Shown piece by piece: positions 1 to 58,649 of a stretch of 64,000 nt of DNA. Position 1 is the first letter of the stretch. Each line of letters opens with the position of its first letter. The notes beneath the pieces are model-generated. The model had not been told where the DNA came from and made no database searches. It was given only the letters and a program-made list of their open reading frames with translations. Origin of the DNA: Paraphysomonas bandaiensis. Its lineage: Eukaryota; Protista; Chrysophyceae. Location of the stretch: the NCBI GenBank assembly GCA_965644295.1, contig CBFFRP010000297.1, positions 186,001 to 250,000 on the forward strand, in the 5' to 3' direction. The translations under genes and the position numbers were made by a program.

Positions 1-645
1 ACACTTGTGTTCTCTCGTTGTGCTAATGAATGCTAGGCTCATGTTGTATCGAGAGATAGCAGTGTATGACTTGTGTAGGCGTTGTGTGATGGCTATATGT
101 TATACAGTTATACAGCTGCTATGTGTGTTCTCTCGTGTACAGTAGCTGAGTGAATATACGTGTAGCAGTACATTGTTATGCTACACTTGTGTTCTCTCGC
201 TGTGCTAATGAATGCTAGGCTCATGTTGTATCGAGAGATAGCAGTGTATGACGTGTGTAGGCGTTGTGTGATGGCTATATGTTATACAGTTATACAGCTG
301 CTATGTGTGTTCTCTCGTGTACAGTAGCTGAGTGAATATGCGTGTAGCAGTACATTGTTATGCTACACTTGTGTTCTCTCGTTGTGCTAATGTATGCTAG
401 GCTCATGTTGTATCGAGAGATAGCAGTGTATGACTTGTGTAGGCGTTGTGTGATGGCTATATGTTATACAGTTATACAGCTGCTATGTGTGTTCTCTCGT
501 GTACAGTAGCTGAGTGAATATACGTGTAGCAGTACATTGTTATGCTACACTTGTGTTCTCTCGTTGTGCTAATGAATGCTAGGCTCATGTTGTATCGAGA
601 GATAGCAGTGTATGACGTGTGTAGGCGTTGTGTGATGGCTATTTG
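1..645. repeat. Tandem repeat, 182-bp unit, about 3.5 copies (may extend beyond the window start); degenerate subunits continue to about 1045
   Basis: Unit start ACACTTGTGTTCTCTCG recurs at 1, 183, 365 and 547 with near-identical intervening sequence. Confidence 0.95.
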
Positions 646-1323
646 TTGAACGGAGTAGATACTCTAGTATAAGATAGGTGTAACGTGACGTGTATTGGTT
701 GTGTGATGGATATAATATGTTGCACTGAGTGAGTACTCGAGTATAAGATATGTGTGACGTGTATTGGTTGAGTGGTGGACATGTTGAACTGAGCGAATAC
801 TCGAATATAAGATATGTGTGACGTTACGTGTATTGGTTATATGTGATGCCTATATGTTGTACAGTTATTCTGCTATGTATGTTCTCTCGTTGAGCTGAGT
901 GAATACTCTAGTATGCTCAGGTTTTACCGCCGAGCGATAGTAGTGTATGGCTTATATTGGTTGAGTGATGGAAATATTGAACGTAGTGAATACTCTAGCA
1001 TAGGATTTGTGTGACGCGACGTGTATTGGTGTTTTATGATGGCTATTAGTAGTAGTATTAGGGCATTCAACGTAGTTACTGGTTAAAGGAAACGTGCTGT
1101 TGGTGTGTCCTATAGGACCTAAATATTAATAAAAATAATTATTAACACTATACTATTGCATTCAAGCACTTTTAGAACCATTCTACAACAATTCTTAAAA
1201 GTCTAGTAAAATCTACTAGAATTTCCCAAATTTCTGAAAATTTCCCACGTTTGCATATTGTTTACTTAGTATCTTATCGGAAAGCACCATGAGGATGGTG
1301 GTCTGCTATACAAGACTAACAGA

Positions 1324-3475: not shown

Positions 3476-3690
3476 GAGGGGGAGTGTTGAGATCTGAAGA
3501 TTCTATATACTTGCAATTGAGTGCAGTATTATGTGAGATGCAAGGATCGAAAGATATATATGTAATTAGTACATTATATTATGTAGTATGAAACTGAAGT
3601 AGAAGTGGATGACTATACAGGATACGATCACTGAGTGTGTGGTTTGTACACTATAGTAGTAAATGAATGGTGTTGAACACATCGAACACA
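3476..3690 (+). mobile_element. Polypurine tract and probable 3' LTR of the Copia element
   Basis: GAGGGGGAG (3476-3484) directly followed by TGTTGA at 3485; the LTR end near ...CGAACACA (about 3690) is a guess. Confidence 0.6.
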
Positions 3691-23691: not shown

Positions 23692-25187
23692 CTGATACGG
23701 TATCTTCATATGATATCCACATATACGGTATAGTGTTGTATATAATATCTAGATATCTCTCCTGGCTAGTATGGGTGGGTATAGTAGGGTTCCTCTGGCA
23801 GTATCTGGGCGTGTCCTACATGGGCAACGGGGATGAGTGGGTGGGTGACTAAATCTTAGCGTTGTATGCGTGGCTGAGCAAATATACTGGCAGGCCTATG
23901 GTGTACAGTAACGCTTTCGGCCAGAGGGCAAATAGGATGTGGGAGCAGACGGTATCTTGCATATGTATCACAAGGAGAGGTAGTCATAAATTACAACAGC
24001 AGTATTCCTCCTTCTCATGTGCCATCCATTACTGTTGCGCTTGCAGCATCACAAAATAGTTGCCAAAAGAATTCTAAAACTAGTAGTTTAACGTAATTTA
24101 CAAATACTAAAAGCGCTGAGGTCGTCAAATCATTAACAATGGCCACCATTATCATCTGATATTAAGGGTTTACTTTTTAAACGTATGATGGACAGACGTA
24201 AATTGAAGAGTCGTAGTATTTTCTGTCTACCACTCAACTACAATGATCCTGGCAAGAGATAGTGTTGAAACCTATTTAAGGTAGCAATTGTTATCACTAT
24301 CATTAGTGTATAGTAGTATAAGGTATAAGGTATATAGTACATAGTTGCATGTTATAATAACTAGTCTACAGAGAATCTTTCAATTAAAAATGGCAGCGCT
24401 TACAAGCTATATAATGCTTTACAACTACAGTAAATACGCTAAATCCTGAAACTTACAGCATTGTGTGATAATTTGTCAGCATTCCTTACGATAGAAAAGA
24501 ATGGTAGCAATATATTGCCTCTCAACAAAGTCGGACTCTTACCTTTTCGTGTGTTCTGGGAATAAGCACCGGAGAGATTTCTCCGGGAAACTAACGTGAC
24601 CGCATATATATAGTCAGCAGATAATTTTCTGTTACTCATAGCTCAATGCTTGTGTGGTACAAGGGGCACTAATAAGTGTTACTTGTGTAGGCGTCTTGGG
24701 CCCTGACGAATAAACTGGAATCTGGGCTGTTCACCACTCACCTCTTATGAACTCAAAAATCCTGAAGTCAGCAGATGTCAGGCATATCAACATTCTGGCT
24801 GGTTACTCACAGCGTTTGCTTTGAGTGATTGAGCAAAGATGGTTGCATCTTGGTGCTTGCGGTGACGGACAAGCCGCTTTTGTAGCGATAAAAAGGATAT
24901 CAAGTTAGGCACTATAATTAGTTAAATTGCAATGCTAACTTAGTTCTGGTTCTTCAACGCCTATTGCTAATTATATATTGCAACGGTAACAAAATATGTT
25001 GAGTTCTGTAGTATGATACGATATACATTGTGAAAACGAAGCGCGTTAATTGTGTGCAATAGGTGAAATTAACTCATTGGTGTAACGCGTGAATATAGAT
25101 TTACTGATGTGTGACTTTCACACATATCGGATTTCCTTTCCACTCCTCTAACATGCGACCGCCAGATACTTGGAGACTCAGCACTCT

Positions 25188-28100
25188 TCATATCGAGTTT
25201 TCTGTCCTTTCTAGCATATGTCTAACAAAAGCTTGATAATTCGATAATGTTTTTTTCGAATTACCATCATTCTTATCTTTACCCGTGGTTGATGCCACCT
25301 TCGTTTTGCGTGATGACGATTGAAGGTGCGATATGGCTTCCTCCAGCGTACAGTTCGATGTCTTTAATGCACTAGATACAGTCGTTAAGCCAACAACAGC
25401 TACAATCTAATGAAATATCTCACCGCTTTTTCCGGCCACACATTACGTAATATCCGTATGGGCCACATTTCACATATACCGGATTTCCTTTCCACTCCCC
25501 TAACATGCGACCGCCAGATTCTTGGAGACTTTCCTTCGACAAATATTCCATTGCAATTTCCGAAGTCACTTCTGAAGGCAGAATAAAGCCAGGTAGTGCA
25601 ACAGCGCGGTAACCCTCAGCTTGCACCGCGAGCGCGCCACGCGTGACACAGAGTGAAACAGGAACATTAAGTGATGGATGGGTAAATAAAACTCTTGGAA
25701 GTCCAATAAAGTCCAACACAGTGCGAAGTGGTGTCGCTTCATTTACCCATGCCGGCAATGACCCTGTTCTTCTTGACGGATCATCTTGGTTTCCTACCGT
25801 TACGAACTTTCCAAACCTGCCATTACGTATCACTATGGGCTGGCCTGTCTCTAGGCAGATTCTACGTTTGTCTCCAGAAAAAGATATTCCATTTTCTATA
25901 ATATTCCGGATAGACTCGACATTTACTTCTCGGATGTCATTTTCCATAGACCGAGGAAGTTTCCACCTCTTGGGCATGTTGTTCTCATCCATAACTGTGT
26001 TACTCTCGAATTCTAACCCTCTCTTTCCGTAGTACACTTTACCAATGCTCTTGATATCTGGTATATCGATAACATGTACATCCGAAAGGTCCTGTTCATC
26101 AAAGACAAGTGCTGCTGCAACACGCGACTTGAGGCCTAAGTTCTTCTCGCTCTCGCTTTCGTCTCCAAGAAAAAATGATGACAGGAACCGTAACTTATCT
26201 GCTTCACCCCCTTTGGAAATATTATCTAAAGCTGATTCCATCGAGGATGTGAACTCTGGTGCTACCAAATCTGGAAATAACTTAGAAATGAGAGCCGACG
26301 TAGCTATACCCCGCGCTGTAGGTAGTAAGACCCGCCCATCCATGGTCACATATCCGCGAGTCTTCAATGTGTCGAATATAGTAGCGTAGGTCGAGGGTCG
26401 TCCTATTCCAGCGAGTTCCAACTCACGAATGAAGCTAGATACGGTGTATCTCCTGGGAGGATTCGTCTCATGCTTCACGCCTCTTGCTCCGGAATGAGAA
26501 AGGACTTCCACTCCAGGGGAATCATCACACTCAGTATCAGAATCAGGTTCAACTGTACCGACAACAGCTGAGCTATCATTCACTGCGGTGGTATCATCCT
26601 GACTTGATGTTGCACAAAGCGTCAGATTTGTACCTATCTCTACATTATTAGTGACACTGGTCATCGGCTCCGAAGATTTATCAGGATAATCTACACCCAA
26701 GTCACTGACAGCAAGATAACCTCTAAACACGATTTCAGTCGAAGAAGCTTTCAACTCGACGTCGTAAATGCTGTCGTCTCCTAAAGAAAGAGGCTCATCG
26801 GATGTTGCTTTAACAGTCACAGTAGTTGTAATAGATTTACTCGGCGGCATCAGTGAAGCTATGGTTCTCTTGAGGATGAGCTCGTACATAGCCTTTTCTA
26901 ATCCTTTTAATTCTGTCTCATCAGGGAGAAGATGCGAGCCATTTATATCGCTTGGACATGCTGGGCGGATAGCCTCATGAGCCTCCTGCGAGTTTTTGGG
27001 TGTTCCTTTAGTACCAATCGCATCCACGTCAGATAACACAAATTCACTGCTAAAGTTGCGATTAATGGTATTTACAGCTGCTGACTTCGCCGGAGCACTC
27101 AAAACTGGTGAATCAGTGCGCATATACGTGATGTACCCTTCTTCATAAAGCTTACGTGCAATAAGCATTGTATGAGAAGGAGAAAGCCCAGTCTCATGAG
27201 CCTCCTGCGAGTTTTTGGGTGTTCCTTTAGTACCAATAGTATCCACGTCTGATAACACAAATTCACTGCTAAAGTTGCGATTAATGGTATTCACAGCTGC
27301 TGACTTCGCCGGAGCACTCAAAACTGGTGAATCAGTGCGCATATACGTGATGTACCCTTCTTCATAAAGCTTATGTGCAATACGCATTGTATGAGAAGGA
27401 GAAAGCCCAAGGCGTCGACTTCCCTCCTGCTGCAATGTAGACGTAATGAAGGCTGGTGGGGGGGAGCGATAGATAGTACTTCTGGTGATATTCGATACCC
27501 GGAATGACACATGTTGGCTGCACAGCCACTGAAGAGAACGTTTCGTCTACACATAGGGCATAAGAGTATGCATAAGTTCAAAACTCTTACCTTTAATTCA
27601 TCAAGTACGATACTGTTAGCCGCAAGTGTAGTTGTTTTCAGATCTCCAGATTCACTGTCAAAGTCGGTGCTTCCTGCAATGCGGCGCCCACCAAGGGACA
27701 CAACTGTGGCTTGCATACATACATCGGAAGTCGTGGAGAAAGATGCTTCGATTGAGTAGAACGTAGACGGCACAAATTTCCATCGTTTCTGTTCACGCTG
27801 TTCGAATAACACGTAAATTTTGGTGCCATGTAATATGTTACCAATACCTCAATGATAAGTTTGAGTCCGCGACTCTGGACTCTGCCAGCACTAATCCCCC
27901 TACTCAGGTATCTACAAAAAGTGATAAACCTTCCGCATTATACACCATTATACATACCTCCAGAGTACTCGTGAGACTGTAAACCCCACAAGTTTGTCCA
28001 ACACTGCCCTCGCCTCTTGGGCGTGTACGAGAGACATATCTAGCTCCCGAGGATTCGAAAATGAATCAATGATTGCACTCTTCGTAATTTCACGGAATAC

Positions 28101-28625
28101 AGCACGCTTAACTGGGACATCTGGATTCAACAATTCCTGTAGATGCCACGAAATTGCTTCGCCTTCGCGATCTTCATCAGTCGCAAGAAGAATTTGTGTG
28201 CAATTTTTCGACAAATTCTGTAGTCTCTGTAGTACTCTTTCTTTTCCATCTGGAACCGCATATATCGGCTTAAAATTATTATCAACATCTATACCAATAG
28301 ATGCTACAGTTAAATTGAGCTCAGGAATAATAGCACTCGATTTATATTTGTCGTTATGTTTCAATAGTGAACTAGACGCTATGTCTCGTATATGTCCTGC
28401 ACAAGAAACCACTCTGTAGTTATATGGGACAAGTTTCTGAATAGATACTGCTTTAGTTGGAGACTCTACAATGACAAGTATTCGATCTGTAGTGTTATAT
28501 GATGCATTTATTGATGTATTGTTTCTATGTGTGGAGTATGATGCACTGGAGTGGATGTATATACTCCTATGACATATCCATGATCGTATAGGAGTGTAAC
28601 GGTACCTACTTATATGCAATGACAT
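25188..28625 (-). CDS. topA: Bacterial-type DNA topoisomerase IA, copy 1 (5 exons; 73-aa internal duplication; frameshifted C-terminus; possibly pseudogenising)
   Basis: IVESPTKA, GHIRD, ATDEDREGEAI, SAGRVQS, GYITYMRTDS (twice), QEAHEAIRP, GIGRPSTYA; a 2-bp insertion in the last exon gives a stop at 25188. Confidence 0.85.
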
Positions 28626-29145
28626 CCTGTGTGAATATAAGGAAGTGTGATAGAGGGTTTAAGTATATAACATGCTGGTTTATAGTATGCTATGGATGGC
28701 TTTATATTATGGACGTGAATGAAGCTCATGTGGAGTTTTCACATCTATGTACACGCGCCTATAGCTGGTAGGACGTCGGGTCCCCACTAATGCCTGTTTT
28801 AAATCACAGTGTCAGTCACAGAGTGGCGATGACGTTAGAGCAAATACATCTTCAGATGTAGTATGGTTTTTTGTGAGATCCACTATAATGATCCAGCTTG
28901 ATTCATACTTTGGATCTCGAGTTCTTCATCATGTCATGTTCTGAATACTAAATTCTGAAAAATCAGTCGTCAAAAATGGCTTTTTTGGTGGATTATTAAG
29001 CAAAACTGAATTCTGAACACTAAATATAGGGATAAAATTCAGGAGTGTTCAGTATATACTGTATCACTGAATAAAAATCGAGTGACGATCCTTTTTTTTA
29101 GGATCCTATCAAAAAATAGTGCTGGATATGAATCCGAGGCCTAAA

Positions 29146-29285: not shown

Positions 29286-29936
29286 GCACAATGTAGCCCG
29301 AGATTTAAGACTCTTATGCTGTTCACATGACTGTGTGTATCACATAGAACACGCACAGCCTGTCTGTTTGTAACATGTAGCTCTATAGATACTGTGCACT
29401 CATAATTGTGTATGAATTTTGTATAATAATATCATTACGTACCTATCAATCCAAAGCAAGGCGCCTACCTCAATTCTAGAGGTTGACGCCTATACAATCA
29501 TATTGGCAGCAATTCCGACATTTCAGATAGTGATGATGGTGTTAGTGATGGTAACTGAATATATATGTCCCTATATTTGACAAAATGGCCAACGAAGCGT
29601 ATGTTGGAATGCACTTTAAGAGCTGGAAAGGGTCTATCCACTGACCAGTGTTTAGAGGATGCTGGTTGGTGACTTAGGATCACAAGTAGCTGAGACATTC
29701 ACATCAATCCATCCCAGCGCTGATGGTAGTTAACTTCCTCGCTACATGGTATTCGTTTTGAAGACATAGCTCTCGATTAGCAGGACGAGGTACCGTGGTA
29801 ATTCTACTGTGCTGAGGCTAGAGGTAATATTGAGATATTGAGAGTGGCGATAGCATTCGCCACAACTATGACTTCTGATCATAAGGACCAGTTGATCAAT
29901 GATCAATTCAGTAGCTAGTTTTTGCGAAAGTAGATA

Positions 29937-31277
29937 GAAGTGAATGTCTGATTATTAGCAGTAGGCGTGTACGAGTCAGGACTAATGTAGCCACACAATA
30001 TAACTAACTAGTTCTTAACTCTGATATCCTACTATTTGGCTATTTGGCGCTACGAAAGCTGCTTGTGCGTCACCGCAAACGCCAAGGTGCAATACTGAAA
30101 GTCTTAGTATTAGCAATAGGCGTTAAAAACCTGCACCAACTTAGTAGCTAGATGAATGCTAGACAAACTAGTTAGACCTCTACTTGTAACTACTCGGTAC
30201 ACATTTTTTTATCCTACTATTTATCGCTACGGAAGCTGCTTGTGCGTCGCCGCAAGCACCAAGGTGCGACCACTTCCGTTCTGAGTTCTTAAGGTGAACA
30301 TCCCGGATGCTGGACTACAGCAGCAGCCCAATACCCCGGTTACCCTTCAGGTAGGCCCTGTCCCGGATGCCCTTGACGTAGGCTCATTCCCGGATGCCTG
30401 TTTATTCGTCAGGGCCCAAAGACGTCTACACAAGTGACACTTATTGGTGTCCCTTGTACCACACAAACATTCGGCTATGAGTGGGCAGAAGAATATCTGC
30501 TGACTATGTTTGCGGCTCACGTTAGTTTCCCAGAGAGAGTCTCTCCGGTACTCATCCCCCAGAACACCACGAAAAGGTGCGAGGCCGACTTTGTTGAGGG
30601 ACCAATGTGCAACCACTTTCACTCTCTCTGTCCTTAAGGTGAGCTGCCCGGATGCTTGACTTCAGTAGGCAGCCCAATACCACAGTTACTCTTGAGGTGG
30701 GCCCATTTCCGGATGCCTGTTCAATAGTCAAGTCCCAAAGACTTCTATACAAGAAGTGACACTTATATTGTCTCTTGTACTACACAAGGTGACGGTCATC
30801 TTACTATTTCTAAGCTTAAATCTGCATTGAAAGTGGTTTCACGTTGGTGCTTGAAATAAGATTTAAAGCTAGTCTTGGTATTTAGTAAGGATACACTTGG
30901 TATTATTAGAGATAAAGATAGTATGATAAGGCCTAATAGTACAATAGCAAGACACGTTTGAGTTGAGCGTTAGCACCACAGGTATGTGCATATCTTGTAC
31001 AGTCGCGTATCATATATAGTTTGGTAATTATTCAGTCCATTTGATATTTCATTTTATACATGTATGTGTTGTATTTACGCGTTAAGGGATATACGTAAAT
31101 CAATGAATCTTAATAGCTTGCGGTGACGCACAAGCAGCATTCGTGAATTCGTAGCGCCAAATGCCAAATAGTAAGATATCAGAGTTAAGCACATACATGT
31201 TAGTTAATTTTTTTTGCTACGTTAGTTCTGACGTTCTGACTCTTACACGCCTATTGCTAATAATCAGACATTCACTA
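29937..31277. mobile_element. Foldback-like arrangement of the dispersed repeat family, about 140-160-bp imperfect inverted arms
   Basis: GTGAATGTCTGATTATTAGCA...GCTGCTTGTGCGTCACCGCAA (about 29940-30078) is mirrored at about 31118-31277; internal CCCGGATGC repeats. Confidence 0.65.
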
Positions 31278-31610: not shown

Positions 31611-34600
31611 CTATTCCCCATCATCTTTAAAGGCCTCTTTTTCTTTGTCGCTAAGCAAACGCCATTCGGCTGCAGCACTCTTCATATCGAGTTTTCTATC
31701 CTTTCTAGCATGTCGAACAAAAACTTGATAATTCGTTAATTTTTTTTTCGAATTACCATCATTCTTATCTTTACCCGTGGTTGATGCCACCTTCGTTTTG
31801 CGTGATGACGATTGAAGGTGCGATATGGCTTCCTCCAGCGTACAGTTCGATGTCTTTAATGCACTAGATACAGTCGTTAAGCCAACAACAGCTACAATCT
31901 AATGAAATATCTCACCGCTTTTTCCGGCCACACATTACGTAATATCCGTATGGGCCACACTTCACATATACCGGATTTCCTTTCCACTCCCCTAACGTGC
32001 GACCGCCAGATTCTTGGAGACTTTCCTTCGACAAATATTCCATTGCAATCTCCGAAGTCACTTCTGAAGGCAGAATAAAGCCGGGTAGTGCAACAGCGCG
32101 GTAACCCTCAGCTTGAACCGCGAGCGAGCCACGCGTGACACAGAGTGAAACAGGAACATTAAGTGATGGATGGGTAAATAAAACTCTTGGAAGCCCAATA
32201 AAGTCCAACACAGTGCGAAGTGGTGTCGCTTCATTTACCCATGCCGGCAATGACCCTGTTCTTCTTGACGGATCATCTTGGTTTCCTACCGTTACGAACT
32301 TTCCAAACCTGCCATTACGTATCACTATGGGCTGGCCTGTCTCTAGGCAGTTTCCACGATTGTCTCCAGAAACAGGTATTCCATTTTCTATAATATTCTG
32401 GATAGACTCGACATTTACTTCTCGGATGTCATTTTCCATAGACTGAGGAAGTTTCCACCTCTTGGGCATGTTGTTCTCATCCATAACTGTGTTACTCTCG
32501 AATTCTAACCCTCTCTTTCCGTAGTACACTTTACCAATGCTCTTGATATCTGGTATATCGATAACATGTACATCCGAAAGGTCCTGTTCATCAAAGACAA
32601 GTGCTGCTGCAACACGCGACTTGAGGCCTAAGTTATTCTCGCTCTCGCTTTCGTCTCCAAGAAAAAATGATGACAGGAACCGTAACTTATCTGCTTCACC
32701 CCCTTTGGAAATATTATCTAAAGCTGATTCCATCGAGGATGTGAACTCTGGTGCTACCAAATCTGGAAATAACTTAGAAATGAGAGCCGACGTAGCTATA
32801 CCCCGCGCTGTAGGTAGTAAGACCCGCCCATCCATAGTCACATATCCGCGAGTCTTCAATGTGTCGAATATAGTAGCGTAGGTCGAGGGTCGTCCTATTC
32901 CAGCGAGTTCCAACTCACGAATGAAGCTAGATGCGGTGTATCTCCTGGGAGGATTCGTCTCATGCTTCACGCCTCTTGCTCCGGAATGAGAAAGGACTTC
33001 CACTCCAGGGGAATCATCACACTCAGTATCAGAATCAGGTTCAACTGTACCGACAACAGCTGAGCTATCATTCACTGCGGTGGTATCATCCCGACTTGAT
33101 GTTGCGCAAAGCGTCAGATTTGTACCTATCTCTACATTGTTAGTGACACTGGTCATCGGCTCCGAAGATTTATCAGGATAATCTACACCCAAGTCACTGA
33201 CAGCAAGATAACCTCTAAACACGATTTCAGTCGAAGAAGCTTTCAACTCGACGTCGTAAACGCTGTCGTCTCCTAAAGAAAGAGGCTCATCAGATGTTGC
33301 TTTAACAGTCACAGTAGTTGTAATAGATTTACTCGGCGGCATCAGTGAAGCTATGGTTCTCTTGAGGATGAGCTCGTACATAGCCTTTTCTAATCCTTCT
33401 AATTCTGTCTCATCAGGGAGAAGATACGAACCATCTATATCGCTGGGACATGCTGGGCGGATAGCCTCATGAGCCTCCTGCGAGTTTTTGGGTGTTCCTT
33501 TAGTACCAATAGCATCCACGTCTGATGACACAAATTCACTGCTAAAGTTGCGATTAATGGTATTCACAGCTGCTGACTTCGCCGGAGCACTCAAAACTGG
33601 TGAATCAGTGCGCATATACGTGATGTACCCTTTTTCATAAAGCTTCTGTGCAATAAGCATAGTATGAGAAGGAGAAAGCCCAAGGCGTCGACTTCCCTCC
33701 TGCTGCAAAGTAGACGTAATGAAGGCTGGTGGGGGAGAGCGAGAGATAGTACTTCTGGTGATATTCGATACCCGGAATGACGCATGTTGGCTGCACAGCC
33801 ACTGAAGAGAACGTTTCGTCTACACATAGGGCATAAGAGTATGCATAAGTTCAAAACTCTTACCTTTAATTCATCAAGTACGATACTGTTAGCCGCAAGT
33901 GTAGTTGTTTTCAGATCTCCAGATTCACTGTCAAAGTCGGTGCTTCCTGCAATGCGGCGCCCACCAAGGGACACAACTGTGGCTTGCATACATACATCGG
34001 AAGTCGTGGAGAAAGATGCTTCGATTGAGTAGAACGTAGACGGCACAAATTTCCATCGTTTCTGTTCACGCTATTCGAATAACACGTAAATTTTGGTGCC
34101 ATGTAATATGTTACCAATACCTCAACGATAAGTTTGAGTCCGCAACTCTGGACTCTACCAGCACTAAGCCCCCTATTCAGGTATCTACAAAAAGTGATAA
34201 ACCTTCCGCATTATACACCATTATACATACCTCCAGAGTACTGGTGAGACTGTAAACCCCACAAGTTTGTCCAACACTGCCCTCGCCTCTTGGGCGTGTA
34301 CGAGAGACATATCGAGCTCCCGAGGATTCGAAAAAGAATCAATGATTGCGCTCTTCGTGATTTCACGGAATACAGCACGCTTAACTGGGACATCTGGATT
34401 CAACAATTCTTGTAGATGCCACGAAATTGCTTCGCCTTCGCGATCTTCATCAGTCGCAAGAAGAATTTGTGTGCAATTTTTCGACAAATTCTGTAGTCTC
34501 TGTAGCACTCTTTCTTTTCCATCTGGAACCGCATATATCGGCTTAAAATTATTATCAACATCTATACCAATAGATGCTACAGTTAAATTGAGCTCAGGAA

Positions 34601-34898
34601 TAATAGCACTCGATTTATATTTGTCGTTATGTTTCAATAGTGAACTAGACGCTATGCCTCGTATATGTCCTGTACAAGAATCCACTGTGTAGTTATCTGG
34701 GACAAGTTTCTGAATAGATACTGCTTTAGTTGGAGACTCTACAATGACAAGTATTCGATCTGTAGTGTTATATGATGCATTTATTGATGTATTGTTTCTA
34801 TGTGTGGAGTATGATGCACTGGAGTGGATGTATATACTCCTATGACATATCCATGATCGTATAGGAGTGTAACGGTACCTACTTATATGCAATGACAT
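31611..34898 (-). CDS. topA: Bacterial-type DNA topoisomerase IA, copy 2 (5 exons, organellar-type N-terminal extension, C-terminal HMG-box-like domain)
   Basis: TOPRIM (IVESPTKA, DEDREGE), SAGRVQS, catalytic GYITYMRTDS, C-terminal GRFG/GPYG repeats; last exon KKKLTNYQVFVR...MKSAAAEWRLLSDKEKEAFKDDGE*. Confidence 0.92.
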
Positions 34899-35219
34899 TC
34901 TGTGTGAATATAAGGAAGTGTGATAGAGGGTTTAAGTATATAACATGCTGGTTTATAGTATGCTATGGATGGCTTTATATTATGGACGTGAATGAAGCTC
35001 ATGTGGACTTTTCTGTAAAATGTGGAAGGTACCGTACTCAAGCCCGCACCATAATGGTGTGGAACTATATAAGTGGTGATGATGAGTGACCAGTGGTATG
35101 TATGGTGTTGCTGGTGAGTAATAGATCCAGGGAGGTGGGTGTTGAAGGAGGAGCTCTCTCATCACAGCATGGTATCATACATACAGAACATAATAACAGC
35201 GAGAACATATCATAGTAGC

Positions 35220-37464
35220 ATGGAATCAACTACCACGGAATCAACTACCACGGAATCAACTACCACGGAATCAACTACCACGGAATCAACTACCACAGGG
35301 GGCATTAGAAAAGTCGGTGATGGGGAAACCAAAAATCGTAACTCCTCTGCGTTAGCTCAGTTTGCGAAGTACTTGGAGATGCGGTTCGACGGGAAGAAGA
35401 GGTATAAGGAACTCATAGACAGTGATATAAATGTAGAACTATTTCAATGTTTCGGTGGCTTTTTGATCGATCACGCCGTCCATGGAACAACGAAGAAGCC
35501 TTTGACCCTAGGTACTGCTTGGCAGTATTTGTCAGACACGAAGACTGCGCTGACGAAGCGATTTAAAAGAAATGAGTTATTAAGCAGCTCCAATGAGCTG
35601 TGGTACAAAGATGTGAGAGCGGCAGTATCAAAGCATATTATCAAGCGGTGTATCGCACAAGGAGTGCGTATATCAGAGAAAACAAGTCCAGTGGGGAAAG
35701 AACTAATGAAGCGCATAGGTGAATACATTATACATCGGGCATCTGATTTCTCCGGTAAGTGGACATACTTCACATATCTATGATTTACTGTATGCTAATA
35801 AACTTTATTTAGAAGTGAAGAAGTATTCATTGTACAATCTCTATTTGGTTTTCACGTTTGCTGCTGTTGGTCGGGTGTCTGAAGCAATGTTTGCTTCGTA
35901 TAATAATGCAATGTGGCACTGCGATGGATACTTAACGTTTGATTGGACAGAATTGAAGGTGGCTTCTATCAAAACAATGAACTTTTTTCCCGACTACTCT
36001 TGTCTAGAGACTTGTGTTTTCTTCGCTTATTCAATGTACTGGATGTCCTGTACTGCAGCAGATCTCAACGGTGACTTCGTCTTTCCAGATCTAGCATTGA
36101 CTACATCAAGCGCTAGTCAATTTGTTTCTAAGCTACTAAAACAAATGATCGGGAAGGTACCTGGAGTTACAAAGGAAACAACAGGCAAGGGTCTTAGAGT
36201 CGGGGCTGCAACTGACATAGCCAGTAGTCAGTCAGGCGGCATCTTCCATGCGATTATGCGTGGAGGATGGGACTTCTCCGGAGAGTGCAGCATTTTTGAG
36301 TATATCATGGGACTAGATGTCACTATTGCTGTGGGTGGAAAAATTTTAAGTGGCTACTCTAATCCCAGGAATAAGATATATCCACCCGAGTGTGTATTTA
36401 TCAACAATGGAAACCGAGAACAAGTGATGGCGTTAATCGAAACATGTTATCCACTCACTTACCCAGAATTTGGGGTTGATGGCTGTCTATTTCAATTTAA
36501 ACTCTCTGTGTTTGCTACATTCCTTATGAGGTTACCATCATTTGTTTCTAAATACACGGCACAACATGCAGTGGTTTGTAAATTCAAGCACAACATGATG
36601 CGCCACCATTTCACTTGGAATGACATAATGCAATGGAGTGCTGCGATTGAGGAGGAATGGCTTCGCCTTAATTTTGTAGACACAAGAAATGTAGACGAAA
36701 TTTACCAGGAGAATCGCATTCTTCGAGACCAAATACAACAGCTTCATAGAAAGTGTGACACCCAAACTATTGCAATAGCTGATCTGCACAAGAAATTAGA
36801 CACTGCTGTGGCTGATATTCTAGAAGGCTTGAAAAATATTCCAACGGATACCACTATACCAACTTCAGAGACTGTATCACGGATACCTACATCGCCTACA
36901 GTCTTGCCTCCGATTACTGAAGGACCTTCCAAAGGTCCATCCACTACTACGACAAATGTTTTTCAATACATGAGAGTTAACATGCAGCGCATGCCCCATA
37001 TATCCTTCATTCAATATAAAACTCTCGAAAAATTATGCTTATCAACAGTTATTATTGACTATTTTGATTATGAATTACATGAAATTGTAGGAAAGAGATA
37101 CCCTATGGTAGACAACGTCAACAAACAGAAAAAACTAAATCGAGTATTGACTAAAGGACTCGGCCTATTGTACGATGACGAGAAACGTTTTCTTGATGAG
37201 CCGAAACCCTGTATGGCAAGTCAGTCTACTTCGTACAGAGAATGGAAGAGTAATTTAAAATGCATAGCTGAAAAGGTTGAATTGCGTGTTATTGTTGATT
37301 TATTTGGTCAGGAAAATTACGACAAGTTTCACCCCAAAAAAAAAGCCTCTAAGAAATACATAAACAGTATATATGATGCAATGAGTGCACGAAGGGACAG
37401 TGATGGTAACATTATTCCAAGGACAAAGAAAAGGAAACTTCAGTCTGATGTTAGTAATCTGTAG
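35220..37464 (+). CDS. Tyrosine recombinase, 2 exons (intron 35755-35812), 728 aa from ATG 35220
   Basis: Splicing keeps frame; motifs GRVSE, KGLRVGAAT, MRGGW, SIFEY; N-terminal helical region; coiled coil after the catalytic domain. Confidence 0.88.
35222..35296 (+). repeat. 15-bp perfect tandem repeat x5 (ESTTT) at the recombinase N-terminus
   Basis: GGAATCAACTACCAC repeated five times. Confidence 0.97.
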
Positions 37465-37990
37465 AATGCCAATATATGTATTCATTTATAACCACTCCAT
37501 CAACTTTTTATAATGTACCCTTATAATTAATGATTCATTAGTAATTGGAATACATCGTATCATTATTTACAGAGCATACAACAGTATAATCAACCATTAC
37601 AGCGTTCAGCATTTTATTATTCGACACAGTCTGATGTTAGTAATCTGTAGAATGCCTATATGTATTCATTTATAACCACTCCATCAACTTTTTATAATGT
37701 ACCCTTATAATTAATGATTCATTAGTAATTGGAATACATCGTATCATTATTTACAGAGCATACAACAGTATAATCAACCATTACAGCGTGCAGCATTTTA
37801 TTATTCGACACAGTCTGATGTTAGTAATCTGTAGAATGCCTATATGTATTCATTTATAACCACTCCATCAACTTTTTATACTGTACCCTTATAATTAATG
37901 ATTCATTAGTAATTGGAATACATCGTATCATTATTTACAGAGCATACAACAGTATAATCAACCATCACAGCGTTCAGCATTTTATTATTC
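37441..37990. repeat. Tandem repeat, 184-186-bp unit x3, beginning in the last codons of the recombinase
   Basis: CAGTCTGATGTTAGTAATCTGTAG at 37441, 37627 and 37811. Confidence 0.95.
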
Positions 37991-38360
37991 CACACCGTTC
38001 AGAATTCTTATCACATACAGCCATACTGCATACCCTTACACAACATGACACATATTCACTGCAAGATGGAACAGGGGCAGCCGGGCGCTTGTGTCGCTTA
38101 GGCATCCCTCTTGCACCGGTAAGTATAAACGTCATTGCGCCTACAACAGCATAATAAACCATCACAGCCTTCAGCATTTTATTATTCCACACCGTTCAGA
38201 ATTCTTATCACATACAGCCATACTGCATACCCTTACACAACATGACACATATTCACTGCAAGATGGTACAGGGGCAGCCGGGCGCTTGTGTCGCTTAGGC
38301 ATCCCTCTTGCACCGGTAAGTATAAACGTCATTGCGCCTACAACAGCATAATAAACCATG
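37960..38360. repeat. Tandem repeat, 197-bp unit x2, inside the Crypton 3' region
   Basis: Near-identical blocks offset by 197 bp (37974 vs 38171). Confidence 0.95.
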
Positions 38361-39299
38361 ACAACATTCAGCATATCATATACCATCACACAACATAGTG
38401 CATGCATGATATACAGCCTTCTATTCCTTCAAATGTACCACTTCTCATCTCTCTACATACCTGACACTTTAAATAGGATGATGGGAGCATGATGCTCCCA
38501 CCTGGAATTCAATCATTGATATCCATATCAAATCACTTCATACCATAATATACAGCCCTTCACAGTTCCTCTCCATACAGCCTTATAAACCTCGTCCAGT
38601 AACTGCATATCTCATCTCACAGTTTCATGAAATAAGATGGTAGCAACATGTTATCACCTATCATTCAAGCACTCATTAACGTGTATCTGCTGCATATGGC
38701 TGCCTCGTCATATTACTATATACATATACTCGATGCATGTGATATGATGCACTATGCTATGATGCACTCTGCTGATTGGATCACTCGATGGGCGCACTTG
38801 CTGTGCGGCCTTTGTGTAAAAACAAGGGTGCGGGATCCCGCACCTGCGGTGCGGGCTAAATAATTTTTCACATCTATGTACACGCGCCTACAGCTGGAGT
38901 ACCATGGAGTATACATACAGTATATTCGTAGTTCTGTTGGTTCGTGTGGACGACATCTAGGCATCATATGTACTGATGGATTTTGGTGGGATAGGTAGGT
39001 ACGTGGTATAATGTACCACGTTGCTATAAGTATTATTCAGTAAGTAGGTACACAGTAGCATGTGATGAAACACACATTGCAATGTACTTAAGTACTGAAC
39101 AGTTGGTATATAGGTACAGTAGAATGTGGTACGTATCATTTGTACCTATCTAGGTACATATGTACAAAAGTGCATAGTGCATATATACAGTGTACATGTC
39201 TACAGGATATATGTATGATATATCAAACGAGCTGTGGCTGCAGTGGCTACAATAACAGAATCATAAACACCATACATCACACTAGAAGTAAACAACACT

Positions 39300-41040
39300 A
39301 TGTACCGCGTACATCAATACATAAACGGAGAGACATTTACGGGTAACGATAACAGTTACTTCACCACATATAACCCTGCAACCAATGAGCCAATAGCTGA
39401 GGTGCAACACGCCAGTCAGAGAGATGTCGATACAGCTGTCAATAGCTGCAAGAAAGGGTTTGAGATATGGTCTGCAATGACGGCTAAAGAGCGAAGTGTT
39501 ATTCTTCTTAATGCCGCACGCATATTACGGGAACGTAACTCTGAATTAGCCAGTCTAGAGGTATAGTAGTAGCTGCCGTAATCAGTCTATAGTTAGCTTT
39601 GCATGACATAACATGCATACTTGTCAGGTTCAAGACACTGGTAAACCGATATGTGAAGCTATTGCAGTTGATATATTGAGTGGAGCCGATGTGATTGAGT
39701 ATTATGCTGGTTTAGTGGTAGCGCTGCAGGGAGAACAGCAACAGCTATCGAAAGATCAGTTTTTCTACACACGGCGCGAGCCTCTCGGAGTGTGTGCCGG
39801 TTCGTTTTGCTTGTTTGTAGTGTCACACGTTGTAATCTATGAAGCAGGTATTGGGGCATGGAATTACCCCATTCAGATTGCCTGTTGGAAGTCCGCTGTT
39901 GCCCTTGCTGCAGGCAACGCAATGATATTTAAACCGTCAGAGGAAACACCTCTTTCTGCTGTAAAACTTGCTGAGGTGTGTCGTCATTGAGTATTTGTTG
40001 TCCATAATGATATTCGACCACATAGATCTACACGGAGGCGGGGGTTCCTCCTGGTGTCTTCAATGTGGTACAAGGTGACGGTCGTGTGGGGCAAATGCTC
40101 ACAACACATCCGGAAATAGCCAAGGTATATTATCTCCCCTCAGTGCCATTTGGAATTAATGGTGTCATGTGGCAGGTATCTTTCACTGGAGAGGTTGGTA
40201 CGGGTAAGAAGGTTATGTCCGCATCTGCAGGTACTTTGAAAGATATCACAATGGAGTTGGGAGGAAAGAGTCCCATGCTCGTATTCAACGATGCTGATCT
40301 CGATAGTGCCGTTAACGCCGCAATGGTGGCGAATTTCTACACACAGGGAGAGATATGTACCAACGGCACACGTGTGTTCGTGCAGCGCGGTATTTATCCA
40401 GCATTTCTAAGTACCCTGCGAGAGAAAACCCGCCAGTTGATTGTTGGCGACCCAGCTGATCCAGGGACCCACATTGGTACCTTACTGCTCTATATATACA
40501 GTTGTATATGACCTTAGATGCTTTTCCACAGGCGCATTGATTTCTCGGCAGCATATGGAGAAAGTGATGGGGTATATAGAACAAGCTCGAGCAGCTGGTG
40601 CGACTGTAGTGCTTGGTGGTGATCGGCCCATTGGTAATGGGTTGGAGAAAGGAAATTTTGTGAACCCTACCATACTCACGGACTGCACGGATGACATGCC
40701 TAATGTTAAGGAAGAAATATTTGGACCGGTAATGTCAATACTAATTTTTGATAATGAAGACGACGCAGTGCGGCGCGCTAACAACACTCACTTCGGGCTT
40801 GCCGCGGGGGTATTCACTCAGAATATTGGGAGAGCCCACCGTGTGATACATGAACTTCAAGCGGGCATTTGTTGGATAAATTCCTGGGGCGATTCTCCTG
40901 CAGAGATGCCTGTGGGAGGTTATAAGCAGTCCGGCATTGGAAGAGAAAATGGCCCAGAGACCCTACGTCATTACACTCAAACGAAGAGTGTGTTTGTTAA
41001 CCTTGCATCTTATCCAAGTGCTTTCAATGGGGTGGAGTAG
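39300..41040 (+). CDS. betB: NAD-dependent betaine aldehyde dehydrogenase (BetB-type), 6 exons
   Basis: [77 protein letters not shown]; introns 39561-39627, 39800-39847, 39976-40025, 40125-40175, 40477-40531. Confidence 0.92.
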
Positions 41041-43011: not shown

Positions 43012-45091
43012 ATGCAAGATTTATTGCAGAGTTTAAGTGGAAATGAGATCAGAGGATGTTCAGTAGCAGACTTTTGCGGCATGAGCATTGCAATTGACGC
43101 TAGCAGTACGTACAATCTATCTCCATTAGTATTGTAGTTTGTAATATATTTTTCTATAGAGTGGCTGAGTAAAGCTGTTTATTACAGCACTGAAGAAGTC
43201 GTTGATGCCAATTTTAAAGATTATATGTTTTATGTCGATTTTTTGCTTGCACGAACTCGTAAATTTCGGGTAGCAGGTGTGGAACCTGTGATGGTATTTA
43301 ACGGGAAAAGCAATCCACTCTCGGTAGTTATTGTATCCTTGACTCGTATGTGACTAACATTTTCATTTGTAGCCACAGTCAAAACTCAAGCGAGAGGAGG
43401 TGAGTGAAGCCAGCCTGGAGCGAGGGCAAAGATTGTTGGAATGTATGAGAAGCACGGAGGATTCTGTATGTAAGGCGAAGCTTCGAAATGAGGCAATTTC
43501 GTGCTTTAAGCGGGGTCTAAAAGTGACTCACGAAATAGAGCGAAACGCAATTGCTGCATTACGGCGTGTAGGTGTCACTGTGGTAGTGGCACCGTGCGAG
43601 GCGGGGGCGCAGATGGCTCATCTCTGCCAGGCTGGTATATGCCAGGCTGCTCTTTCGGAAGATCCAGAACTCTTAGTGTATAGTGCCATTTGTGGAACTC
43701 CTTTTCCCATCCTATATCAGTTTGAGAACTCAGGCATGGTCCAGGCTGTTAGTTTGCGGACGCTGAACATTCACAAACAGAACGAAGTGTCTTCTCCGCA
43801 GAATGGTATGAAGGATTTGGTAGCTCATACAGGGTCTGGAACCGAACTGGTGTCTCTCTTTCAGCAGCATTTTTCAGGATCTGCCAACAGACGACTCTTG
43901 GTACAGATGTGTGTGCTGTCAGGATGCGAATACGCTGACGCCATGCCAGGGGTGGGAGTGAGAGAGGCGCTTGACGTATGTGTGAAGTTTAAGGATCTCC
44001 CCGATGATGTTCGATTAGTTCGAATGGTGCGTTATCTAGAAGGATTAAGAAGTGCTGGAGGAAGGATTTGCCGGACAAGGTTTTTAGAGAACGCCCTACG
44101 TGCTGAAGCCTTTTTTTACTACCACCCGATCTATGACCCCAGAACTAGACAGGTCAAAAACTTTTGTGATCCCAGAGTTATTTCCTGTTTCTCTGATGGA
44201 GACACAAACGAAGGAGTTAAAGGGAGCTCCTTACCTCCTCTTATAGATAATGCTGAGCTGGAGCGCATAGCTGATTGCGACGAACTGCTCTCTGGAGCGC
44301 CTGCTGTTGTATGTGTAGCAGATGTGTGTGAAGGTCTGTACTCATTGGTGGAGTTTACTCCAATAACACCCCAACTGCCATGGGAGAACCCCGAGCTTAG
44401 GGCTCCGGCCTATGACAGTGCAGCACTTTGTAAACATCCTCGCAATAATGTGTGGGCGGCACGTAGTAATCTGATACACTCGCTCTCCCCACATATCCCT
44501 CATAAAAATACACACATCACTGAGGAGCGTCGCTCAACCAAAGTGGAACCAGAAAATATGTTGTCGTACTCATACTCGCATTCCACAGCTCGAATGTGTA
44601 CCAGACGAATCAAACGTAGTTCTGATTGTGCAGGGGTGCTGTCACCTATTTGTGATAAGCGTCAATGCACCAGGGTTGTAGACGAAAACGAGGTATCTAC
44701 TCCCTTATCGAGTAGAGATAATAAGTTTAGTGAGAGGGAGAACATATCTCCTAAGTTTTTGGTCGAAGGGAAACCAACTTCAAGCCAAGAAAATGGCGAT
44801 GGTGAAGTCTATTGTACACCTACATTGAGCGCAAATGACTCACACCATCGTGATCAGCATGTTGAGTTCATGACACCAGATTATGCCCGTCTGGTAATGT
44901 CGGGTGCAGATTCATCACCTGTGAAAGATGTTGGATCTGCACCTCGAATATCTGAATCCCCTTCAGGTCGTAATTGTGCGAAGCGTAAGTCAGTGGATGC
45001 GGTCGCTGTGTTAGCCAACCGCGTCGGCAAAGGAAAGAAGCAGAAAACACTTATGGTTGCTTCTATAAAGTCCTACTTCGTAACCTCGTAG
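43012..45091 (+). CDS. EXO1: Exonuclease 1-like (XPG/Rad2 family), 3 or more exons, catalytic acidic residues altered
   Basis: IAIDAS, GVEPVMVFNG, VVVAPCEAGAQMAHL, SEDPELLVY, MCVLSGCEY...GVG (H3TH), C-terminal PIP-like tail (..SIKSYF); introns about 43106-43159 and 43324-43371; start uncertain. Confidence 0.8.
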
Positions 45092-46219: not shown

Positions 46220-46347
46220 GTATCCTGCATAGTCACTCACTTCTACTTCAGTTTCATACTACACAATATAATGTACTAATTACATATATATCTTTCGATC
46301 CTTGCATCTCACATAATACTACACTCAATTGCAAGTATATAGAATCT
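46220..46347 (+). repeat. About 125-bp direct repeat, second copy at about 48595-48718
   Basis: TCTTTCGATCCTTGCATCTCACATAATACT...CTCAATTGCAAGTATATAGAATCT in both places. Confidence 0.85.
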
Positions 46348-47649: not shown

Positions 47650-48884
47650 TAAATACTGGTAACATCATGGCATACATGCATGCTAATATTATGTAGAACG
47701 CATTTATGTTTACACTGTAGGTATGAATTTGTCACTATATATATGCATAGTTGTAGAACTCAACACATACATACTTATAAACAAACTCATTACATCATAT
47801 ACTGTATGCACGCTAATATGTAGTCATTCATGATATCATTGTTGTTACTATTACACTGACCACATATACATCAGATCATATTCCAAATATAAGTGGGGCT
47901 AAGCGAAAGATTGATACGGCATTCACTGCAGGTAAGAAATTATAAACAATTACCAAGTAGATAACTAGAGCTCACAACATAACACCCTACTATTATTATT
48001 AGCTACATAATATATTTTATATATCGCTCATTGCTATATACTATCGATCAACCACCATATATATTTTAATATAATATTGTTTTATGGCAATTTAGAAATT
48101 CCGAGAATTGGAAAAAAGTATGAGGCTGTGTCTGATTTAAAAAAGCAAACAAAGCACAGAATGAAGGTATGCCTTGTAGATATTATATATAGCTACGCAT
48201 GTATAGTAGTATAAATTATTTCTGTTTGAATAGACATGGGTAACGAGGCATTTCATTGACGTTGCAAAGACATTAAAAGCTGGACAGGAGGATATTCCAG
48301 GGGTTATACAATTAGGTGTGCAAGGTGTGGAGGAGAAGCTGCATGAACGTATTGTTTCCCCCCACACTATTGAACCCTCTTCGATAGTAAATGATACTGA
48401 AGATAATTCAATGGTGCTGGCCTACAGAGTAAACACAGAGCTAGCTACTGCCGCATCAAAGAGCGTGGCACAGGCCCTTCTGTCTACAGTGTCAACTACT
48501 GGAGAAATGACACAGGCTACATTGGCCGAAAGATTTAAATGCTCTATGCGTCAGGTTAAAAAAGCAAAACGACAAGCCAAGATTAACCCTAATCGTATCC
48601 TGTATAGTCACCAACTTATATTTCAGTTTCATACTACTCAATATAATGTACTAATTATATATCTTTCGATCCTTGCATCTCACATAATACTGCACTCAAT
48701 TGCAAGTATATAGAATCTTCAGATCTCAACAAGTACAAATCAAAAAAAGGTATCTGGTACAATCAAATCTAAGAAGTAAAAACAATAATATATAAATATA
48801 CGCTTAACAAACATTAAGATAAATATGTTAACATTCAATAAACAGCATCATCCATTGTTTCACCTTATTATTAAGTCCTTGTAG

Positions 48885-55075: not shown

Positions 55076-58000
55076 CTAGCATTTGGACTTTCTTTCTTTG
55101 CTTTGCAAAAACTCCCTTCTAGAGCTATAAGACAAAGTCAACGACGGGCTCCTTTTCTTCGTGGCTTCAATGATCTCTTCACGCTCTTTATCACTGGAGC
55201 AGTCATCGATAATGCAACGTATATACGGCATATAGCTGCTTGAGTCGTCGTCATTGAGCACCCAATCCATAACACTAGATCCATAATTAAAGCCACCTCT
55301 TTGGCCATATGAGCGAGTAAGCTTTCCGATATTTTCATAAGAGCGGGCAGCCGCTGCATCCACTGCGCCCAAGCTATTCTTTAAGACAGAATCCAATTGG
55401 GATGCTACTCCAGGGTGATCACTGCGCAGTGCATCTGAATTCCTTATTGACAGCTTGTACATGCTGAGATCAGTAGCAGCTCGAATACCCACGTAAGACA
55501 ACTCTTCTCCTCGTAAGTATTCCACTCCCATTATATCTCCTGGTTTCAGAGTTCCACATAACCTCTCTTCGCCATTTTCATGTTCGTCAATAACGTCTGC
55601 ATCTCCATCACATAACAAGTACACCCCACCACTACCACTCTCATAATTAAATACATATGCATCTTGCGGAACAAAGCATGGCTCAAAATACTTCAGAAGA
55701 GTATAGGATATGGATGGAGCAAACGGAGAAAACACATTAGGGAACTGCTCAATTACGATGCTATGGGAATGAGACGATACTAGAACCCGGATCGTATGCG
55801 GCATTCTTTCCCACATCTCTACCTCCGGATAAGCACTTCTCATCACAGTTGTGTGAGAGAAATGCTTAAGAAGTGCTGACTGCATCGCTACTGGGAAGGT
55901 TTGGTCGTTGATGTACTCCCGAATAAGCGTCGCTCTGTTTGCATGTCTTGCCGTAGCGATGTTCTCATCCTTTTCGGCCTCTGCAACTTGTGATACAAAG
56001 AACGCAACTACTAGACAGCCTATCAGCATGACGAACAACGCGTATATACGTTCTGCGTCATTCTCGGGCACAATATCACCTGTATACAACTTCAGTCGCA
56101 TTACTCAATATATTATGGCACATACCGTATCCTACGGAGGTCGATGTTGTGAATATCCAATATACAGCGGCGATATACTTTGAATACAAATCATCACTGA
56201 CCCTGGAGCGTTCCGAATCACTCCAGGTTTGACCATCGTCTCGCTTCAAAGTTAGGCGGGCCCACCCACAAGCAAAAACATGAGTGAATAGGCAAATGCC
56301 AAAAAACATTTGCAAAAACTTCATAGTCTGCGCTCGAAGATTCGAAAAGGGAACTCGTCTAACATCACCTCTTTGGGAGTATTTTAAAACTTTGAGAAGA
56401 CGCGACGCTCGCAATACTTTAACTATACGAATAACACGTACAATGCGGACTATTTTCAAAAATTTTAGTAACTGGAGACCACTTTGAGATAAAAGAAAAG
56501 AAAACGGAAAGCCTGACGCTAAATCAATAGCGAACCACCCGCGAAGGTATCGCGAGGCGATTGATCGGTGATCAGTATTGAGAGTGAAGTCAGGCTGTTC
56601 GAATGCAGTAATGAAGCCGAAGAATATGTCAACGAGAAAAATGACATCTATGAGAACATCATATATGTGCCATGCTTCGCTGTTCTTAATGTCGAACCCG
56701 ATTCTAAGTGAGGACGTGATGATAGTAAGTACCGTGCAAACCACAATCATCAAATCAAAGTCCACTTTCCAACGAGAATAAGGATTTATAATTCCCCTAC
56801 GAAGCATTTCCAAACTTGTCTCTAATTCAACGACATACTCTCTGTCGCGACTTGCCGTCTCTCCACTTGACCGCGCCACACGATACGTTGAAGGCTCGCT
56901 GCTTTTATCGGAAGCTTCATTGCTAAGTGCCAGCGAGATTGACGCCCTCGCCATCGAGGTTTCTGACCCGAAAGATCCATTCCAGGCGTCTTGTGCAGGC
57001 ACGACACTGTCATTGAGCACGACAAACGGCGCAGACAAGCTGTGGTCAGACGATGACGATACAGTGTTGACCATAAAAGACACAACACGATCGTGGTCTT
57101 CGTGCTCCTGCTTGGCGCGTTTCGACAGCAAAGGTGCAAGCCAGGGAAACTCCTTCATTGCAAGGCCAGTTGTGTCTAGCCAGAGTAGCTCTGTTACTTG
57201 TGCAGCGGAATGAGCTGCCCAATACATTTTCTCCACGTGCATTGCATTGGCAGTTCCAAAATCACCTCCTGGAGTGTGTATAGAAACCAACACTGACAAA
57301 TCTCTTTCTATATCTAGACGGTGAGTGCGATGACCATGAACCCTTCCCGAAAGAACAAAAAATACATCTACGCAGTAGTCCTCCTCGCCCACTATTACTT
57401 CCCCTGGCTCCACCAAATATGGATGACAAGTGTGCATGACCTGTGAGAGATACCTAGGGGAATTTGCCCAGAGGTTCAACTTAGTGACAGGAGAATTGAG
57501 TGACTGCATGACCTCCATTCGAAGATTCACCGGTGCAGTCATGAAACCCCTCTGTCCTCTCAGTACCGGGGCTTTAGCATAGTAATACACTACATGATCC
57601 CATAGGCGAGAGACAATGCTGCGCGGAATGCCCTTTTCACGGAGGTAAACACCTAACTCAGCCATATGAAGTCGCTTCTCCACAGCTGCTGGGGTGGTAT
57701 CTCCTGATTTCTCAAGCAACATACCCAGCACGTATCCACATATCAACGACCCCACAACCATCACCAGGGTACTGTACAGCAAGCCTGCTGAGCTGGACAG
57801 GACCACGTCGCCATAACCAACATTAAGGATGGTCGCCAGGGTCCAATGCAACGAAAGTACATACTCTGACACTAAGTTCCCGGCTGAACCACACTCGAGA
57901 TATGTGTAGGAGTCCTCGTCAGTGGCGGTTGAGCACTTGGACATGGAGAAAAAGACACAAGAAAATAAATGGGACAAAAATAAAATCATCATGAGGACCG

Positions 58001-58649
58001 ATATGAAATCATAGAGGGCTGTGGTGATATGGCCGCTAGCTTTCATATTTTTTAGCTTTCTGTTTAAATTCAAAAGACGCACCACCTTGAATATCCTCAA
58101 CAGCCTTATCATCTTTAAAATAGTCAGGTTACTGGTACTATAGTTACGAAAACCAGCGGTTAGTATAGCAGTGAAAGGAATTGTTGATATCAAATCTGGA
58201 ACGAAAGACGTACGCAGGTATCTCCGTGCAATTTTCGATCGACTCTTTATGACAGAGCCATTATCCTCGTACGTAGTGAGAAATGCCAGGATAATATCAA
58301 TAAAGAAAACCGAATCAACTCCAAGGTCCACATAAAACCATGCGCCAACGACATCAAGGTGAAAACCCAGTCGGAAGGGGACGACGATTACACTGTAAAC
58401 TACGTTCAATGCAACAAAACAATCCCATAACACTTTCAGAACACTGTCTGAATCAATTACAAAGGCCTCAGGTGAAGATTCAAGCCTCCAACTACCAGAC
58501 AGATATGATTCCCATTTAAAACGTCGTTGTGAGAAATATTTTCTCTTCCATTGATCGACTGGTACAGCCACACGATTGTCTTTCTCTTCTTCTCCTAATT
58601 GTATTGATACAAATTTTGATACAGTAAATACTGTATTATTATCACACAT
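55076..58649 (-). CDS. Cyclic-nucleotide-binding-domain K+ channel (KCNH/CNG-like) with two tandem 6TM-pore-CNBD repeats; intron 56080-56125
   Basis: Two S4 segments (KMIRLLRIFKVVRLL; KIVRIVRVIRIVKVLR), pores TILNVGYGD and TSTSVGYGD, two CNBD-like regions. Confidence 0.92.

Follow-up and report, generated by a model that had tools for sequence, protein, structure and literature searches.

A CryptonS-like tyrosine recombinase transposon with base-resolved ends and an empty counterpart of its target site beside duplicated topoisomerase genes

Genomic context

The window analysed here is a stretch of 64,000 nucleotides which carries two copies of a host gene for a bacterial-type topoisomerase IA (topA) and, upstream of copy 2, an insert encoding a recombinase (Table 1). 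The host is probably a marine eukaryote belonging to the stramenopiles; the stretch or part of it is present in 20 listed runs from 11 studies, several of them marine. The insert sits in the divergent spacer between topA and a betaine-aldehyde-dehydrogenase-like gene (39300-41040), with the likely start of topA copy 2 lying 111 bp from the left core of the element. TopA copy 1 ends 28 bp past the empty core and lacks the 3' end that is kept in copy 2. Copy 2 also has a short extra 3' coding stretch (31611-31862) resembling an HMG-box helix which is absent in copy 1. Patchy inverted repeats (24521-24974 and 29929-30598, 70-87% identical) bracket copy 1, and because of them this copy may be the cargo of a pack-type element instead of a plain tandem duplication. 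A scan of the window with bacterial promoter models, the host being a eukaryote, gave matches at chance level.

Table 1. Positions of the element, its parts and the topA genes in the window
Feature	Position	Strand	Remarks
topA copy 1, derived duplicate	25179..28768	-	219-bp internal duplication; 3' end truncated
Empty TTTTC site, upstream region of topA copy 1	28736..28740	+	Joint in all four runs
topA copy 2, host bacterial-type topoisomerase IA gene	31611..34898	-	Complete 3' end
Left 5-bp core TTTTC	35009..35013	+	Same 5-mer at four other left junctions
Element body between cores	35014..38864	+	Sequence; depth jumps at boundaries
Left subterminal box AGCCCGCACC	35041..35050	+	Inverted copy of 38848-38857
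Recombinase exon 1	35220..35754	+	ESTTT x5 repeat, then helical core-binding domain
58-nt GT-AG intron	35755..35812	+	Absent from contigs L001 and L002
Recombinase exon 2	35813..37464	+	Catalytic domain, conserved helical region to ~residue 485, coiled coil, family-specific tail
Catalytic residue codons	R199 35872, K227 35956, K304 36187, R307 36196, W331 36268, Y342 36301
3' tandem arrays, 184 bp x3 then 197 bp x2.2	37441..38374	+	Non-coding; no match in Rfam search
Right subterminal cluster, three GGTGCGGG/CCCGCACC boxes	38827..38857	+
Right 5-bp core TTTTC	38865..38869	+	X6 right-end contig; X1 alternative flanks

Ends of the element and the empty site

Comparison of the window with itself shows that an insert of 3,856 bp (35014-38869) splits a TTTTC sequence, leaving one TTTTC at 35009-35013 and another at 38865-38869. 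When 35014-38869 is removed in silico, the remaining sequence is collinear with 28600-28768, and the filled and empty sites differ by exactly the element plus one core. The left flanks are homologous over 1,551 bp (27190-28740 and 33463-35013, 98.0% identity). The right flanks match at 27 of 28 bases (38870-38897 and 28741-28768; the runner-up within the window matches at 18 of 28), and this arm of the empty site is short because the topA duplication stops there. The joint 35008 to 38865 that marks an empty site is present in all four runs examined, twice in X12, and contig depth jumps at both element boundaries in four runs. The split TTTTC upstream of topA copy 2 and the empty site at copy 1, as described in the first-pass annotation, are thus confirmed by coordinates and collinearity. 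The empty site is real, but that annotation left out both the mere 28 bp of homology on the right and a difference in the base 5' of the core, which is G at 28735 (copy 1) and C at 35008 (copy 2). In both X12 contigs that cross the empty joint the core is preceded by 31 bases, so that the branch falls at 35008. From this geometry, with both sites empty, the paralogues appear to differ at this position even when the element is absent, and the G/C difference was rejected as an insertion footprint. In a comparison of filled and empty sites by itself, a recombination core and a duplicated fixed target look alike.

Four further left flanks were read from near-identical copies in public assemblies (L001/2, L006, L007/8 and L030). 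Every one of them meets the element at TTTTC, preceded by T, A, C or G. TTTTC is therefore found in 5/5 fully read left junctions with all four bases occurring at -1; its frequency in the window is 0.0017 per position. As the -1 base varies, conservation on the left side is confined to exactly the 5 bp of the core. In run X6 the shared contig at the right end terminates at 38869, and X1 shows other flanking sequences beyond that point. The base-resolved ends and 5-bp core claimed in the first-pass annotation, which had proposed collecting other copies with their flanks, thus recur at independent sites. Left-end contigs in X1 and X6 begin at 35012, so the middle base of TTTTC is different in at least one copy. 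Provided that the loose letters lie directly at the junction, this variant could tentatively be read as TTGTC, which would parallel the centre-degenerate CAYCG of the Chlamydomonas element discussed below.

The element ends have neither a terminal inverted repeat (5/30 matches between them) nor long direct repeats, and the insert contains no reverse transcriptase (RT) and no further long ORF; downstream of the gene no stop-free run exceeds 108 codons. The annotated absence of RT and long terminal inverted repeats is accordingly borne out. A 10-bp subterminal inverted box is asymmetrically placed, with a probability of ~0.001-0.002 for such a match between the terminal 60-mers. The 8-mer GGTGCGGG/CCCGCACC has three copies close to the right end, one close to the left end (35043) and no others in the window; the GGTGCGGG boxes are candidate accessory binding sites. 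The reconstructed circle junction is not visibly flanked by symmetric arms like those of lox.

Some minor features were seen around the junctions. The left junction CTGTAAA (35013-35019) is identical at 6/7 positions to CTGTAAG, the terminal repeat of the diatom element CryptonS-1_PTri, possibly by chance. ATGT lies at most 8 bases upstream of the core in 3/5 sites (35001-35004, L006 and L007) with variable spacing against a background of 5.6%, and the target in the window is framed by ATGTG/CACAT; viewed post hoc, a weak target preference is possible. The left-end DNA pattern had no match in metagenome and viral contigs. The 16 matches to the right-end pattern were discarded as chance 17-mers in unrelated surroundings.

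Recombinase

The recombinase coding sequence (35220-35754 joined to 35813-37464) specifies 728 amino acids with zero internal stops. Exactly the predicted 58-nt intron is missing from two JGI contigs, L001 and L002. For this reason they are taken to be RNA-derived, which would mean that at least one sample contains spliced transcripts of the gene. Both spliced contigs start 116 bases upstream of the element, in the host flank (contig positions 1-116), which suggests that transcripts at this locus read through from a promoter nearby. The copy number of the 15-bp coding repeat that specifies ESTTT (35222-35296) differs among family members.

Pfam, NCBIfam and PDB sequence searches with the 728-aa protein gave no match, and its identification is by structure alone. 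A word-based homologue search recovered near-identical proteins only, and an exhaustive search recovered 371 relatives at E <=0.001, nearly all of them 25-40% identical. A structure model built on 97 relatives (pLDDT 93.7) is most similar to Flp and Cre (Cre Z 16.4 over 262 residues); the matches after Cre are Flp, Ndc10, XerH and phage integrases. The first-pass annotation had predicted an uninterrupted, spliced tyrosine recombinase and had made this reading depend on the fold; the stop-free ORF, the two contigs lacking the intron and the Cre/Flp fold all agree with it. The columns of R199, K227, R307, W331 (W/H) and Y342 are 92-100% conserved in the 97 relatives. The His position of the HxxR motif is occupied by Lys304, in a column that is Thr, His or Lys across the relatives. 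Type IB topoisomerases have Lys at the equivalent position and so, by analogy, Lys304 need not inactivate the protein; the recombinase is probably catalytically active despite this substitution. For residues 345-485 there are matches in 60 or more of the fetched proteins, and this region is conserved across the family, unlike the tail beyond residue 560. A tree of unnamed relatives did not resolve the branching at its base.

For the distant relatives on L003-L005 and L026-L029, one boundary each could be read and no clear terminal repeat was seen. On L003 (880-3688; freshwater or other metagenome contigs), the relative adjoins a Gypsy-type RT gene, and its right boundary is visible and its left boundary is not.

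Copy number and strain differences

Copy number was estimated from the strain-labelled runs X1 (organism A, which may be the sample that the window comes from) and X12 (organism D). In X1, depth is 36.8 over the unique flank, 593-685 over the recombinase core and 1,951 over the 5' part, or ~16-19x and ~53x the flank. These ratios are rough, depth not being equal to copy number, and correspond to roughly 16-19 full-core copies in organism A and about 50 copies with ends, including deletion derivatives. Family contigs in X1 are identical to the window copy over 468, 851 and 341 nt. The family is dispersed: four other flanks were read directly, there are loose ends at both boundaries, and depth is high. 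Deletion derivatives that have lost the recombinase part keep both element ends. One, skipping 35792-37097, is abundant in X1 and X6, and another, skipping ~35990-37202, is found in X12 and in L006, L030 and L031.

In X12 the family is present at ~3x and its copies are defective, 36056-36607 having no coverage at 90% likeness. Two X12 contigs cross the empty joint, and one of these (6.4 kb) continues through the whole copy-2 downstream flank; because it spans the joint into this flank, both paralogous topA sites are empty in organism D. The copy-2 site is filled in X1 and X3, since the flank contig begins inside the element. The family is therefore multi-copy and strain-variable, in keeping with the recent element that was first proposed. 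In a defective copy on L007 (254-299 and 985-1029) a 10-bp deletion has removed the left GC box. The same copy is interrupted at 35878 by foreign sequence seen also in X6 and X12.

Classification and related systems

The element is a Crypton: the recombinase is its sole mobilising enzyme, its short terminal direct repeat matches the target, and it is dispersed in multiple copies. Of the R-H-R-Y residues of Cryptons, R199, R307 and Y342 are present (with K227 and W331), and Lys304 stands at the His position. Placement by features and Atlas neighbours makes membership of the CryptonS class likely. The Atlas clusters closest to the protein consist of oomycete and diatom sequences that have no Pfam family (TM 0.82-0.84; feature score 0.98), and the cluster of one recombinase relative includes Skeletonema japonicum. 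Because these nearest relatives lack GCR1_C, the element is termed CryptonS-like. CryptonS elements, whose hosts are oomycetes and Phaeodactylum, encode a recombinase without GCR1_C but with a conserved C-terminal region, and have 5-6-bp terminal repeats (Kojima and Jurka 2011, PMC3212892). The present element shares a single recombinase gene without GCR1_C, a conserved region C-terminal to the catalytic domain (residues 345-485), a 5-bp terminal direct repeat, non-autonomous derivatives and a length inside the listed 2.5-5.9 kb. It differs in its core, TTTTC, which is absent from the cores listed for CryptonS (TATGG in most, TTACTG, TAATG and CTGTAAG; PMC3212892), and the relatives found are just ~25-37% identical in the catalytic domain.

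Other classes were rejected. CryptonF was excluded because the C-terminal GCR1_C domain is absent in a Pfam search. CryptonA and CryptonI (DUF3504-type, with neither a C-terminal domain nor terminal repeats) were excluded by the lack of a Pfam match and the presence of terminal TTTTC repeats. DIRS and Ngaro elements were excluded because there is no RT/RNase H and there are no inverted or split direct repeats. A Starship (DUF3435 captain plus cargo in a giant element) was excluded because there is no DUF3435 match and the element is small. Starships move by a tyrosine recombinase, have short direct repeats arising through target homology and leave footprint-free empty sites (PMC10104507), and their circle has been demonstrated (bioRxiv 10.64898/2026.09.21.753150). 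The present element resembles them in its tyrosine recombinase, its short direct repeats matching the target and its footprint-free empty sites, but has no DUF3435 match, carries no cargo, is 3.9 kb in length and, to judge by its relatives, is not fungal.

The closest parallel in behaviour is CryptonF-1_cRei of Chlamydomonas, an active element reported in 2023 to excise cleanly and to have a 5-bp core that its target matches (PMC9977147). Both have a fixed 5-bp core identical to the target, precise empty sites, a rise in copy number and gene-proximal insertion. The Chlamydomonas element differs in its class (CryptonF) and its target (CACCG/CAYCG; PMC9977147), and its movement was seen in mutation-accumulation lines, whereas activity here is deduced from strain differences alone. 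The recombinase shares the fold and the order of catalytic residues of Cre and Flp (Cre Z 16.4, 262 residues). It differs in being 12-15% identical to them, in having Lys for His at HxxR and in its ~380 extra C-terminal residues, and the core of the element is not flanked by symmetric 13-bp arms.

Proposed model

The favoured interpretation, with a probability of about 0.9, is that the topA duplication came first and that an autonomous CryptonS-like DNA transposon then inserted into the spacer separating copy 2 from the aldehyde dehydrogenase gene. The proposed model is as follows. A Cre-like tyrosine recombinase would recombine the two cores, giving an excised circle with one TTTTC and the right end joined to the left. 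The single TTTTC of this presumed circular intermediate would recombine with a genomic TTTTC, so that either end of the inserted element carries a core. The products at the start and finish of this route are both observed. A single precise insertion into copy 2, made in the A lineage while the family was expanding, accounts for the pattern, and the deletion derivatives would be moved in trans. No end-to-start joint of a circle was found in the contigs of four runs, contig sets being prone to drop rare molecules.

The first-pass annotation had left open whether the element inserted into copy 2 or excised precisely from copy 1. Insertion after the duplication is favoured, and is far more parsimonious, because both sites are empty in organism D and copy 1 is a truncated derivative; excision from copy 1 is disfavoured. 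Clean excisions of Cryptons are documented (PMC9977147), and an excised site would be indistinguishable from one that was never filled, but presence of the element before the duplication would require at least two independent clean losses, one from copy 1 and one, in organism D, from copy 2. Divergence between the paralogues is 2%, yet the element cannot be told from the consensus of its family, which is expanded in A and scarce in D. An early presence followed by excision is accordingly improbable.

Filled and empty sites would also look alike if TTTTC were a true target-site duplication made by a fixed-target DDE transposase supplied in trans, with the recombinase only a passenger or resolvase. 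A Crypton-Mariner composite moved by a DDE enzyme, MarCry-1_FO, is indeed known. The present element, however, has neither terminal inverted repeats nor a second ORF, and its recombinase-deleted derivatives have the same ends, as expected for non-autonomous Cryptons (CryptonS-N families), so that this origin is very improbable. The short right-flank homology (28 bp) could be taken to mean that copy 1 is a microhomology deletion or an assembly artefact and not a real empty site. Against this, the 35008 to 38865 joint recurs across the runs and independent copies stop at the same bases; the empty copy-2 allele in X12 refutes it for practical purposes, and its probability is negligible. Precise insertion of the Crypton into topA copy 2 accordingly remains the preferred account.

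Significance

Clean excision together with a 5-bp core that matches the target is not a new mechanism, as it has already been seen in the active Chlamydomonas Crypton (PMC9977147). What is new is a Crypton family with an unlisted core whose target, empty site and ends are defined to the nucleotide. The ends of Cryptons are usually hard to define, and here they are base-resolved with a fixed core. The family also offers a single locus in both the filled and the empty state, naturally occurring mini-elements, and strains that have or have not undergone a burst, and so makes the Crypton mechanism cheap to test. A circular intermediate was proposed for Cryptons in 2003 and is still called hypothesised in the literature, an incomplete search of which revealed no demonstration of a Crypton circle. 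The family could still be transposing in cultured organism A strains, which we consider somewhat short of an even chance, and would then be the first CryptonS-type element caught active. A still-active family with ~17 intact copies and defined ends would allow direct detection of a Crypton circle and would provide a one-protein eukaryotic integrase with a 5-bp target. Located in the divergent spacer so near the likely start of the complete topA, the element may alter host gene expression.

Other genes and repeats in the window

Further host genes in the window encode an XPG/Exo1-like nuclease (43400-45091) and a cyclic-nucleotide-gated ion channel (56076-58649). The first part of the window (1-3357) contains a Copia-type RT ORF (RVT_2, 1324-3357) preceded by a 182-bp tandem array. 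A dispersed repeat of 130-145 bp is found three times (3485-3628, 46220-46347 and 48592-48731; 91-96% identical), and its copies are probably the ends of another transposon.
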